A stretch of 63,568 nucleotides of DNA, filler included, from Salisapilia sapeloensis CBS 127946 (Eukaryota > Protista > Oomycota), in assembly GCA_023334545.1 (NCBI GenBank). It is 6 parts of 6 records of this genome, joined end to end, with 100 filler letters (N's around TTAATTAATTAA, not from the genome) between each part and the next. Parts side by side here need not be neighbours in the genome. Positions count along the whole stretch, not along the records: positions 55,080 to 59,066 come from JAADVB010000703.1; 5 more parts are not named here. The stretch is one strand, 5' to 3'. Numbering within the stretch: the first letter of the stretch is position 1; every line of letters begins with the position of its first letter. The position numbers and the translations under genes were made by a program. This document shows, one piece after another, positions 55,080 through 59,066 of this stretch. The notes beneath the pieces were generated by a model. That model saw only the letters and a list, made by a program, of their open reading frames with translations, made no database searches and was not told where the DNA came from.

Positions 55080-56872
55080 ACTATGGGAGGGATGTGAAGC
55101 AGCTTCCTGTTTTCTCCTTCTTGGTTCGCTTCGGCGATCGGTTCCTGCACTACAACTTTGTGTGTGCCCTACTAAACGACCTCTTCGGTGTCCAAACGCG
55201 TGGTGGCTGCCAGTGCGCTGGCCCTTACGCATCCCGTCTATTAGGACTTACCAAAGAAGACTTGGTAAGTATCGAGAACTCTCTTATTGACAAGAAAGAG
55301 ATGCTCCGCCCGGGTTTCTCCCGCGTTTCATTCCCCTATGCCATGACCCAGGCAGACTTGCAATATGTACTCGATGCCATTCACTTTGTCGCGAATGAAG
55401 GCTGGAAGTTCATGCCGTACTACAAATTCAACCATAAAAGTGGTGCTTGGAAACATACGTCGAGGTTTACGAAATTCCCGAACAGAAAATGGCTGTCGAA
55501 CATTGCGACTAGGAAAGAGAGTCGCAATCTCAAAGTAGACGACTTGGAGTCACATCGAAAAGCAAATATGGAGGAAGCACATCGATTAGCGAAAGAGAAT
55601 TTAAAGAGCGTTGGCTCCGTCGCACCCACTGCTGCAGACATGCTGGATGAAGCGTACGAACCGCTGCGTTGGTTTGTGTATCCGTATGAAGCAGTTGCTG
55701 CCATGCAAAAGGGAGAGAAGCCAGCTCTTCAATCTTTGTTAGAAGGACCGTACCAACCACAGCGGTACGTGGATGGAAGCCTTCGACTCCAATGGGAGAG
55801 CACAAGTACAGATGAAAAGCAAACTGAAGTGGACGAGCAAGAGACTATCTCATCACCAACATCCGTATCCGACGTTTCTCATACAAACGCTCCTGTCGCC
55901 ATTCCAGAGAAACTACGACAGCAGTCACTTGACCGACAGGTTGGAGGCAAGTATCCTCTTCGCTCCACAACTGTCGACTATAAGCAACCTCGATCGGAAG
56001 CACCTGTGCAACCAACTGTCTCTACACCTGCACCTCCAATCATTCCAACTGCCAAACTCTTCCCGACGCCTCCGAAGAAACTGATGCGATGGGTCGGTCA
56101 AGCTCTGATGCAGTGGGGTATGATCAAAGACGGTGATCGTCTTCTCTTGGGACTTTCAGGAGGTAAAGACTCGCTGAGTCTCCTCCACGTCTTGCTTGCG
56201 TTCCAAAAGCGTGCTCCGATCAAGTTTGACTTGGCATGTGCGACTGTGGATCCTCAGTCAGCAGGCTTTGATCCATCTCCTCTAAAAGCATACATGAAAG
56301 CGCTAAACATTCCGTACTACTTTTTATCGGACAACATCATGGAGCGAGCGACGTGTGAGATGCAAGGAGACTCTTTCTGTTCCTACTGTGCTCGCATGAA
56401 GCGCGGACTGCTCTACTCCTGCTGTCGAGAGGAAAAGTTTAACAAGCTAGTGCTGGCGCAACACTTGGACGATCTGGCTGAAAGCTTCTTCATGTCTGCC
56501 ATGCACAATGGTCAATTGCGGACGATGAAGGCTGTGTACTGGAATGATGAAAAGGATATTCAAGTGATTCGACCGCTCGCGTATGTGCGTGAAGTGGAGC
56601 TCAAACACTTTGCCACCAAGGAATGTCTGCCCGTGATCAATGAGAATTGCCCTGCGTGCTTTGAAGAGCCGACGGAGCGTCGACGTGTGAAGAAGATGTT
56701 GGCACAGGAAGAAAGCTTGTATCCAGAGATGTACAATTCCTTGCGCCGAGCATTGCTGCCGCTTATGGATGACGACGTCTACAAGCCTTTGGAGGCCGTT
56801 CGATCTCGACTGGAAGAATCCAAACAAGCACGATCGAAGCGTGTCAAGCAGCCCAAGAAAGGAAAGCAGTAG
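55080..56872 (+). CDS. Cysteine desulfurase-like (class V PLP) C-terminal half fused to TtcA-type tRNA 2-thiocytidine synthetase; 5'-truncated
   Basis: LPVFSFL...LHYNFVCALLNDLFGVQTRGGCQCAGPY...KPG-like RPGFSRVSF (SufS/CsdA-like), in frame with KKLMRWVGQAL.....IKDGDRLLLGLSGGKDS, CSYCARMKRGLLY, AQHLDD, VIRPLAYVRE and CPAC, which are colinear with bacterial TtcA. Confidence 0.88.
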
Positions 56873-58891
56873 GAAAGTATTAATAGCAAACTCGTAGGCT
56901 TCGTTCGCGCTTCCGATAATGGCTTGTAGATTTGCTTGGTAGAGCACGACGATAAGAATACCCATGCAAATGGTAGCTTTCGACTACATTCGAATAGCTA
57001 TTTGGTAAGATCTTTCTGGCTAATATGTTGGTGGAAAGATTGGCGATTTTAAATGGCGGTAGGCATTTTTGTACTGAGAACTAAGAGTCGTTTTCCACTG
57101 TGTGTACAGATCCACAAGACTGTATCAACCAAGCCATGTATAAAAGTATCGTGCGTGAACGTGTCAATCGCAGTAGAATCTTGTTCGCAGCTTAAGAGGC
57201 AGCATCCACGCGAATATCTTTATGTTGTGACTGTTGCGTGTAGACTGCTAAAGAATTGATAGAACTTCACGCACATGAGCGTTCTATCACACAACAGTCG
57301 GAGTATAACACTAAGCATATTGTCAATAAATCCACTCAAATATTTAAATGAAGAGTTAGGAGCTATGCGACCTATTTCAAGCTTCTGACTAACTTTCAAA
57401 GATCAAGCTATATGTCCTCTTCTTCTGTCTTCAATTCTATAGCTAGAATTTTTGCCCCATACTACTGTAACCACCAACGTGACATCTAGTTAGATCCGAA
57501 TTCATGTTCGGCAGGAATCAACCTCGGAGTGCTAGATTCAGCAACGCCTAGTAAGCTATACGCCAGACCTTGATAAATGTACTCGGACGTAGGTACTAGT
57601 TAACTACTTCACTGTCCATTATTGTATGTTGCAGTTTTACATATAATATTGATAGACAAACAGAAGCAAGAGTAGCCAAGCGCTTGCTCATCTTTTGCAA
57701 TAAAATGGTGATGGTACGAATCGTAGAGTAGTAGAATATAGTCTCATTTTGTTAGAGCAGTATAAGTTGGTAGCACGCTACAAGAACTGGAGTGTTATGT
57801 GTATGGTAACCCACGGCATCGACGGATAGTAGATACCTTTACAGTCATCTGCGATAGCTGCTTTTCAACGTTTTGTGTCTCAACGACGGTAGGGGTAACA
57901 AGATGCACCAAGCCGAAGGGGAATTAGCTGGCACATTGTTTCGAGCTTTCCCAGGAAACTAAACTTAAAGCATCAGTGATGGTAACTTGGACTACACCCT
58001 GCATCGTCTATTATCTTTTCTTTCCTTTTCTGTATCAAAGAGAACGGTGATGATGAGCAAGATGCTTGATCATCGCAGACGGGAGCGAAGGCAGGATCAG
58101 CTATGGTCGCATGCAGTCCACTGGATGCTTGAAAATGGCATCAACTACCAAAGGCTTTTCTGATTAGTCATTGACTAGATATAATGACTGATGGGTGAAT
58201 ACCTAGCAACCATGAATTCAGAGGGACGATAAGTGATGAAGAAGAGACCAATTGGCAGATGCACAAACTAATCAACCCGTGAGCCTTTCTTTTTTACTTT
58301 TAAGCGATAGACGAGTCTGGCCAAGTGTTAAATGAAGTTAATGGCTGCCTTTCGTTGAATTAGATTGTCTGAACACTTCAATAATCAAGTTATTGAGCTG
58401 ATACTCGTTCGAGAGTAATTGGTCAGGCATAGCAATAAGTAACTGTCTACTTTGCCTTTTGGCATGCGATCAATGTGGCAAGATCTTCATGCTCTCCTTG
58501 GATTTCGTATGAGACAATTTGTCCATAAAGATATTCGGACCAGAATGCTGTCCGGAATAGCAAGAGACGTATCCGCTCAAATGCACCCATGGAAACCGAC
58601 ATTAAGCTTGAAAATGTGTCAAACTGACTGACATGGATACGCGCTCATCTTGTATTACAAGATGCACTGAACAGTGGAAAATGAAAGTATAACAGGAACA
58701 AAATTTGCCTTGGTTGAACGTTCCATTCATTCCTATTTTCTCTCGATTCCGAACAAGTCTTCGCAGCTCGGTCATCCGCGAGATCAAGTTTCAACACTAA
58801 TTGCTTTCCTTTAAATTACTTCGGAGGTTTCAAGAGATAACCAGTAACTTCACCTTCCATCGGATTTCATCAAGACCAACTCTCATTCCGC

Positions 58892-59066
58892 ATGACTGTG
58901 TGCATCAAAATGGCTACGCCTGCACCTTCACCAAAACCAGTAGGGTACGACCCACGCCAAGCCATGCCGCCTCAGGCTGTCGATAATCAAGACTTGTCCG
59001 ATGACGAGAACAACGTGCAAGTGAGCAAGTCAATCGAGACCCTCGACCTCGTGCGAGAGAGTGTCA
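58892..59066 (+). CDS. N-terminal fragment of a hypothetical protein cut by contig edge
   Basis: M(TVCIK)MATPAPSPKPVGYDPRQAMPPQAVDNQDLSDDENNVQVSKSIETLDLVRESV runs open into the spacer and follows a TCATTC Inr-like motif at about 58883. Confidence 0.4.

Follow-up and report, generated by a model that had tools for sequence, protein, structure and literature searches.

A segment of the genome of the oomycete Salisapilia sapeloensis CBS 127946 raises the question of whether a eukaryote may carry a transfer RNA (tRNA) thiolase that is fused to its own sulfur donor. The segment analysed (positions 55080–59066, ~4 kb, from record JAADVB010000703.1) belongs to a longer stretch of 63,568 nucleotides, here termed the window, which joins parts of six records of this genome. 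An initial annotation proposed that one open reading frame (ORF) in the segment links a cysteine desulfurase to a bacterial-type TtcA, the enzyme that forms 2-thiocytidine at tRNA position 32 (s2C32). The analysis described here favours, at a probability of about 0.62, the reading that this ORF is part of an oomycete nuclear gene, one of a family encoding proteins of ~1000 amino acids (aa), and that the product is a self-supplied tRNA C32 2-thiolase. Within this reading we infer the desulfurase activity, the sulfur hand-over, the C32 target and the cellular localisation. Residue numbers below count along the window ORF.

That the two parts form one protein is seen from the reading frame and from homologues. 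The ORF listing and the translation show no stop across the 596 codons of the fusion frame, which is open at the 5′ edge of the segment. Full-length homologues that carry both the class V pyridoxal 5′-phosphate (PLP) enzyme family PF00266 and the PP-loop family PF01171 align gap-free over 96–100% of the ORF, and the match is far above chance because the best homologue has an expectation value (E) of 1e-252. Residue 5 corresponds to residue 405 of a 1041-aa Pythium homologue (P0002), so about 400 N-terminal codons are absent and the segment carries the 3′ two-thirds of the fusion gene. The ORF reads as the tail of a class V PLP enzyme (~100 aa), an extension (~135 aa), a disordered linker (~75 aa) and a TtcA-like PP-loop domain. 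The in-frame fusion first proposed holds over all 596 codons, and the low-complexity linker is limited to residues ~243–318.

The predicted structure agrees with this layout. An AlphaFold model of the window ORF, made with a 62-sequence alignment as input, has a mean predicted local distance difference test score (pLDDT) of 81.6; residues 7–240 and 325–590 are folded, and the linker between them is disordered, with pLDDT below 50 over residues 243–258, 260–289 and 291–318. In a 16-sequence alignment the linker has no conserved columns and its length differs among species. Foldseek matches the thiolase block to the [4Fe-4S] thiolases NcsA (6scy) and TtuA (5mkp, 3vrh and 5ztb), and then to TilS. 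The NcsA and TtuA matches have E values of ~1e-13, template modelling scores by target of 0.61–0.66 and about 20% identity. No TtcA chain was among the matches in the PDB sequence search or the fold search.

The C-terminal domain is matched by PF01171 in Pfam (residues 354–517, E 1.8e-17), and its top NCBIfam model is TtcA (NF007972, 209 bits over residues 332–561). Other NCBIfam models score 70 bits (TilS N-domain), 45 bits (TtuA) and 32 bits (NcsA; 31.7 bits against an NcsA cut-off of 500). Residues 320–596 contain no further CxxC pairs, and the zinc fingers of CTU1, NcsA and TtuA are therefore absent. By these scores and motifs the PP-loop domain is clearly of the TtcA type and not of the CTU1/NcsA type. 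The initial annotation had preferred TtcA to CTU1/Ncs6, and this preference is borne out also by the 50–61% identity to bacterial TtcA-like proteins described below.

The catalytic motifs SGGKDS, CSYC and CPAC are all where the initial annotation had placed them. SGGKDS, the ATP-binding and adenylation motif, lies opposite SGGKDS of Escherichia coli TtcA; CSYC lies opposite CSLC, which holds Cys122 and Cys125, and NCPAC lies opposite PCNLC. SGGKDS and the four cysteines C433, C436, C523 and C526 do not vary in either the 16-sequence or the 62-sequence eukaryotic alignment. In E. coli TtcA, the [4Fe-4S] cluster and s2C32 both require Cys122, Cys125 and Cys222 but do not depend on three further conserved cysteines (Bouvier et al., 2014; PMC4081106). 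As judged from the alignment, all three cluster cysteines have counterparts in the window domain, and C526 is likely the third [4Fe-4S] ligand. It should be pointed out that the numbering in PMC4081106 is internally offset by 9: Cys219/Cys222 and Cys200 of that paper are C210/C213 and C191 in the RefSeq translation (L081:6014-6949:-), and Cys122 and Cys125 agree.

The N-terminal part, taken alone, matched no family in Pfam because just the tail of the class V fold lies in the segment. Against PDB sequences it gave one marginal match, to the cysteine desulfurase 6a6e (E 0.79), together with chance-level matches to PAS, APOBEC and phycobilisome linker proteins. Its identification comes from the full-length homologues, which carry PF00266; in three of them the top desulfurase model is the SufS family TIGR01979, at 106–123 bits. 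In the oomycete homologue P0002 the counterpart of residues 7–103 aligns with residues ~325–377 of solved SufS chains, and over these window residues pLDDT is mostly above 90. The SufS/CsdA type of the initial annotation therefore stands, but the extent does not: what is present is not the C-terminal half of the PLP enzyme but about its last quarter (~100 aa), plus the ~135-aa extension.

The loop RGGCQCAGP provides the candidate persulfide cysteine. In P0002 this sequence is found opposite RAGHHCAQP or RSGHHCALP of SufS structures (RAGHHCAQP in chains 8d8s and 5b7s), and it fits the type II catalytic loop R-x-G-x-x-C-A-x-P. G42, C43 and C45 are invariant in both the 16-sequence and the 62-sequence eukaryotic alignments, and also in stand-alone paralogues. 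C45 is assigned as the likely persulfide cysteine because it aligns with the SufS catalytic cysteine; by this alignment it is the counterpart of the SufS persulfide residue, and its codon is at the exact position given in the initial annotation. The PLP-lysine region of a homologue, SGHKFIGGPG, aligns with SGHKMLGPTG of solved SufS, and the motif S.HKF.GGPG is near-invariant in full-length homologues. On model scores and alignment, the desulfurase-like domain is a distant, separate subfamily relative to SufS.

The proposed mechanism would run as follows. The PLP domain would take sulfur from L-cysteine and form a persulfide on C45 in the RGGCxCAGP loop, and the sulfur would then be handed on, inside one polypeptide or between the two of a dimer, to the free iron atom of a [4Fe-4S] cluster whose ligands are C433, C436 and C526. 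With adenosine triphosphate (ATP), the SGGKDS PP-loop would adenylate O2 of cytidine 32 in certain tRNAs, and cluster-bound sulfide would displace adenosine monophosphate (AMP) to give 2-thiocytidine. With the fusion, the thiolase would carry a sulfur supply of its own and would probably act in the cytosol. The full-length oomycete homologues have acidic N-termini, and a cytosolic location is likely because these do not resemble mitochondrial presequences.

The family is widespread in eukaryotes. A word-indexed protein search gave 864 relatives at E ≤0.001 among the candidates scored, and most of 120 listed relatives carry PF00266 and PF01171 at a length of ~900–1040 aa. More than 100 proteins show this architecture, and they come from five or more supergroups of eukaryotes. 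In the oomycetes it is found in Pythium, Phytophthora, Peronospora, Bremia, Plasmopara, Saprolegnia, Aphanomyces, Achlya and Albugo, and other stramenopiles with both domains are Triparma, Tribonema, a Bacillariaceae diatom and Chrysophaeum. Further fusions occur in the protists Guillardia, Naegleria, Acrasis, Euglena and Stentor, in the chytrid fungus Batrachochytrium salamandrivorans, and in animals, i.e. Trichoplax, three sponges, Porites and the crinoid Antedon. Entries from Ectocarpus, Heterosigma and Cylindrotheca are shorter or partial and show PF01171 alone or lower coverage. Several fusion entries are complete ORFs from transcriptome assemblies, so that other lineages do have a single mRNA for both parts. 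Some records of the family already bear the name TtcA or cysteine desulfurase in the databases. The fusion is real, but it is not peculiar to this genome; it belongs to a eukaryotic family already on record.

The window ORF is 62–66% identical to the oomycete members, and 66% is the maximum against any database protein. In a maximum-likelihood tree of the TtcA domain (15 eukaryotes, 24 bacteria and E. coli), the eukaryotic sequences form one clade with support of 99/97, a result that fits a single origin for the fused domain. The window sequence groups with oomycetes (99/94), E. coli TtcA is on a very long branch, and the nearest bacterial sequences are proteobacterial TtcA-like proteins. In a quick tree built from all 596 aa, the window sequence falls within the peronosporalean group of Pythium, Phytophthora and downy mildews, on a fairly long branch, with a Shimodaira–Hasegawa-like approximate likelihood ratio test (SH-aLRT) support of 98. 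The eukaryotic host assumed at the outset is thus confirmed by an oomycete clade in two trees.

The thiolase domain has bacterial relatives. A scan of bacteria and archaea, with one genome per species, gave at least 593 relatives, and the details that follow come from the best 80 of these (L001–L080). All 80 belong to Pseudomonadota, and sulfur oxidisers among the Gamma- and Betaproteobacteria and Acidithiobacillia make up the larger part. At 50–61% identity over the whole 240-aa domain they are closer to the eukaryotic domain than E. coli TtcA (33%), and the motif ENCPACF is common to them; L013:2956-3762 and L006:2959-3726 are example loci. The bacterial relatives are stand-alone proteins of ~250–280 aa. 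When all ORFs in the 3-kb flanks of the 80 loci were searched with a hidden Markov model of the N-terminal domain, a single marginal match was obtained (E 1.7e-4). Within these short flanks, no linkage of the bacterial TtcA-like genes to a class V gene of this family was seen.

Between the PLP fold and the linker there is a conserved extension of ~135 aa for which no Pfam family was matched. AlphaFold predicts it to be folded and mostly helical, with two low-confidence loops, and its conserved blocks are GWKF.P.Y.F....G.W.H, RKWLS and LRWFVYP.EA. Y114, W137 and W197 are invariant in both the 16- and the 62-sequence alignments, and R135, R196, P201 and P226 in the 16-sequence alignment. An exhaustive profile search with residues 1–245 gave 2532 cluster representatives at E ≤0.001, many of which are proteins of 560–700 aa that match at their C-terminal end. 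All ten of the 560–700-aa class V proteins that were scanned have PF00266 alone. Eight were also aligned; among these, P0226 has the beginning of a TtcA domain and resembles a fusion that has been cut short. Oomycetes also have stand-alone paralogues, for example in Albugo laibachii (CCA24615.1; P0132, 619 aa) and Aphanomyces euteiches (P0262, 657 aa). The CxC loop (RGGCxCAGP) and the ~135-aa extension are both retained in the stand-alone paralogues, which makes the extension a property of the class V subfamily rather than of the fusion. A C2H2-type zinc-finger insert (PF12874 or PF12171) is found inside or before the class V domain in P0106 (Stentor), P0157 and P0088/P0089; its occurrence suggests a lineage-specific addition, possibly for nucleic-acid binding.

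Experimental evidence on the modification comes from an animal. 2-Thiocytidine was long regarded as a bacterial and archaeal tRNA modification. The only paper mentioning the fusion that a literature search found is a preprint of 28 September 2026, which detects s2C32 in cytoplasmic tRNA-Lys-UUU of Aplysia californica and terms it the first eukaryotic s2C (bioRxiv 10.64898/2026.09.27.754811). The view that s2C is purely prokaryotic, from which the initial annotation started, is outdated by this work, and the s2C32 proposal gains outside support from it, in that Aplysia has both s2C32 and an orthologous fusion (bioRxiv 10.64898/2026.09.27.754811). The candidate enzyme is LOC101861551, a protein of 1177 aa with a CsdA domain and a TtcA-like domain, termed ‘IscS-TtcA’; the fusion is reported in molluscs and in more distant animals, and Aplysia also has a stand-alone paralogue with 44% identity (bioRxiv 10.64898/2026.09.27.754811). 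Cys448 and Cys450 are reported as conserved, and neither could be assigned as the catalytic cysteine because the comparison was with IscS (bioRxiv 10.64898/2026.09.27.754811). The interpretation of the window ORF as a fused C32 thiolase is thus supported, and it is largely anticipated by the preprint.

Several points weigh against a self-supplied C32 thiolase. The equivalog cut-off of NF007972 is 272 bits, and E. coli TtcA scores 514 bits on this model; the window sequence (209 bits) and the other fusions (190–217 bits) miss it, and four scanned bacterial relatives, at 201–215 bits, are likewise below it. The domain is therefore termed TtcA-like and is not filed as an equivalog, and it represents a subfamily distinct from enteric TtcA. 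Its identity to E. coli TtcA (from NC_000913) is low, 33% over 229 aa, and the sister subfamily with the ENCPACF motif has no characterised member. On the desulfurase side, the scores of 106–123 bits miss the TIGR01979 cut-off of 475 bits by far, and a literature search found no characterised member of this class V subfamily. The PLP lysine would lie outside the segment, beyond its 5′ edge, and the oomycete gene is known here from DNA alone. In addition, type II desulfurases usually rely on a separate acceptor (SufE, SufU or CsdE). As both subfamilies miss the TtcA and SufS cut-offs, another thiolation target or another role of the PLP domain has to be taken into account. Lastly, the link between fusion and s2C in Aplysia is one of co-occurrence, without a knock-out or an in vitro assay (bioRxiv 10.64898/2026.09.27.754811).

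The first alternative to be weighed concerns the target: instead of C32, the ENCPACF-type domain could thiolate a different nucleoside or tRNA position, an RNA other than tRNA, or a small molecule. TtuA, NcsA, LarE and related PP-loop [4Fe-4S] enzymes apply the same chemistry to other substrates, and the position of the window domain and its bacterial relatives, below the TtcA cut-off and far from the long-branched E. coli TtcA in the tree, would fit such a role. Nevertheless this alternative is unlikely, in that TtcA is by far the top model (209 bits versus at most 70 for any other), every residue essential in TtcA is retained, and the sole fusion-bearing eukaryote examined, Aplysia, has its s2C at position 32.

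The second alternative concerns the donor, and it is somewhat less likely still. The PLP domain may not be the source of the substrate's sulfur but may build or repair the Fe-S cluster of the thiolase, or it may be a lyase for selenocysteine or for another C-S bond; NFS1 and the cytosolic iron-sulfur assembly pathway, the general cellular route, would in that event deliver the sulfur that is inserted. Conservation of the fusion across eukaryotic supergroups points instead to direct functional coupling, in homologues the SufS-type catalytic cysteine loop is invariant and the PLP-lysine motif near-invariant, and in bacteria IscS is the established sulfur source for s2C32. In favour of this alternative, the class V subfamily is very distant from characterised SufS and is also found alone, with no TtcA attached, in oomycetes, in animals and probably in bacteria, and so has a TtcA-independent job. 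SufS/CsdB also act on selenocysteine, and some of the matching PDB entries are named ‘selenocysteine lyase’.

An artefact, i.e. read-through of two neighbouring genes, a bacterial contaminant or a dead pseudogene, is very improbable although the segment is just 4 kb, lacks the 5′ end of the gene and shows it as DNA alone, since there are 596 stop-free codons with intact invariant catalytic residues, the same fusion is found in more than 100 eukaryotic proteins including complete transcriptome ORFs, the top matches are oomycetes at 62–66% and not bacteria, and the bacterial TtcA-like genes are stand-alone in the 80 loci (3-kb flanks, with the one marginal match at E 1.7e-4).

A fused thiolase that supplies its own sulfur for C32 is therefore the preferred reading. 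It can be extended in a bolder and rather doubtful direction, which we hold to be about as unlikely as a different thiolation target. The fusion would be ancient, possibly dating to the last eukaryotic common ancestor, and would act in the cytosol independently of NFS1, mobilising its own sulfur; the ENCPACF thiolase may be more than a copy of bacterial TtcA and could place a thionucleoside at a target new to eukaryotes, for instance a tRNA set or RNA class unlike the bacterial s2C32 substrates. If true, the uncharacterised class V subfamily and its stand-alone paralogue would form a second route, so far overlooked, by which eukaryotes mobilise sulfur.

The features of the segment are collected in Table 1.

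Table 1. Features of the Salisapilia sapeloensis segment; positions are those of the whole window
Feature	Positions	Strand	Residues	Remarks
Fusion ORF, 3′ part	55082–56872	+	1–596	596 codons, then TAG (56870–56872); open at the 5′ edge of the segment
C-terminal small domain of a type II (SufS/CsdA-like) class V PLP enzyme	55100–55390	+	7–103	
Loop RGGCQCAGP	55199–55225	+	40–48	Candidate persulfide cysteine C45 at 55214–55216
Subfamily-specific class V extension	55391–55801	+	104–240	~135 aa, conserved
Disordered Ser/Thr/Pro/Gln-rich linker	55808–56035	+	243–318	~75 aa
TtcA-like PP-loop ATP pyrophosphatase/tRNA thiolase domain	56054–56776	+	325–565	
PP-loop SGGKDS	56156–56173	+	359–364	ATP-binding and adenylation motif
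First CxxC, CSYC	56378–56389	+	C433, C436	Opposite Cys122/Cys125 of E. coli TtcA
Second CxxC, CPAC	56648–56659	+	C523, C526	
C-terminal helix and basic tail	56777–56869	+	566–596	Differs among species
Downstream stretch	56873–58891			~2 kb, lower G+C, without recognisable gene
ATG-started ORF, 58 codons	58892–59066	+		Runs past the right edge; outside the fusion; no Pfam match

A splice-donor-like sequence, GGTAAGTAT, is present at about position 55265 (within 55262–55272). An intron starting there was considered and rejected, as the in-frame translation is gap-free against the homologues. The G+C content is ~0.5 inside the fusion ORF and ~0.39–0.44 over the 2 kb 3′ of the stop. Positions 56873–59066 gave no tRNA, no Rfam match and no Pfam match in ORFs, and repeats there are short and at chance level only. 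The stretch directly downstream of the stop is probably 3′ untranslated region and intergenic DNA; its ~2 kb are long for an oomycete intergenic region. The short ORF that follows is Pro-rich and also rich in acidic residues, and may mark where the next gene begins or be its first exon.

With respect to significance, cytosolic sulfur for eukaryotic tRNA thiolation is, to our knowledge, thought to come only via NFS1 and the URM1/CTU route. The conserved fusion spans oomycetes to sponges; s2C32, or a thio-modification related to it, may therefore occur widely among eukaryotes and be made by an enzyme with its own sulfur donor. The family was already in the databases and the fusion in the preprint, and the window sequence, as one more member, is modest when taken alone. 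The present analysis adds that the family extends broadly over the supergroups of eukaryotes, assigns the persulfide to one cysteine, recognises a class V subfamily that has its own extension and also exists as stand-alone paralogues, and identifies the bacterial proteins nearest to the thiolase domain. Specific residues to mutate are at hand, since the likely persulfide carrier, on which the preprint did not decide, is named here; the oomycete copy offers a microbe for the genetic proof that the animal study lacks.

How the window fusion compares with known systems can be seen first with Aplysia. By the preprint's description, the Aplysia protein likewise consists of a PLP domain of the CsdA type and a TtcA-like domain, joined by a linker of low conservation; it also has a CxC pair after the PLP domain, SGGKDS and CSxC ... 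CPAC. The inter-domain region differs, with a linker of ~75 aa in the window ORF and 405 aa in Aplysia. The catalytic cysteine also was approached differently: the second cysteine of the window's CxC aligns with that of SufS, whereas the preprint aligned the Aplysia protein with IscS. For Cys588, which is conserved among molluscs, the 16- and 62-sequence alignments of eukaryotes show no invariant equivalent. Other animal members (sponges, Trichoplax and a crinoid) share the clade of the window TtcA domain.

E. coli TtcA and the window domain have SGGKDS and both CxxC motifs in common, in equal order and spacing, and by analogy a similar [4Fe-4S]- and ATP-dependent mechanism may be expected. 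The second motif differs, ENCPACF in the window versus PCNLCG in E. coli, and two of the dispensable conserved cysteines of enteric TtcA are missing from the window domain. In addition, E. coli TtcA relies on IscS as a separate protein, while in the window fusion the presumed donor of sulfur is part of the same polypeptide. The proteobacterial TtcA-like proteins, such as those of Thermithiobacillus tepidarius and Thiofilum flexile, resemble the window domain in ENCPACF and in the sub-threshold TtcA score, but are stand-alone. CTU1/Ncs6, NcsA and TtuA, the PP-loop [4Fe-4S] thiolases of the eukaryotic cytosol and of archaea, have the fold and the cluster-based chemistry expected of the window domain; sequence scores are weak (32–45 bits), and the window has no zinc-finger CxxC.

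With SufS and CsdA, the fold, the PLP-lysine HK and the loop R-x-G-x-x-C-A-x-P align with full-length members of the family. Unlike SufS, these have an extra invariant cysteine two residues before the catalytic one and the ~135-aa C-terminal extension. We know of no SufE, SufU or CsdE partner for this desulfurase-like subfamily. A parallel in design is MOCOS/ABA3, a cytosolic NifS-like desulfurase fused to its sulfur-acceptor domain. Natural desulfurase–rhodanese chimeras, in which a desulfurase domain is joined to a sulfur-using domain, are described in another report (PMC8931425). By analogy, all of these and the window fusion would join a class V desulfurase to a consumer of its persulfide, outside the mitochondrial NFS1 route. 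The acceptor is a MOSC or rhodanese domain in MOCOS/ABA3 and the chimeras but a PP-loop thiolase in the window fusion, and the product differs accordingly.

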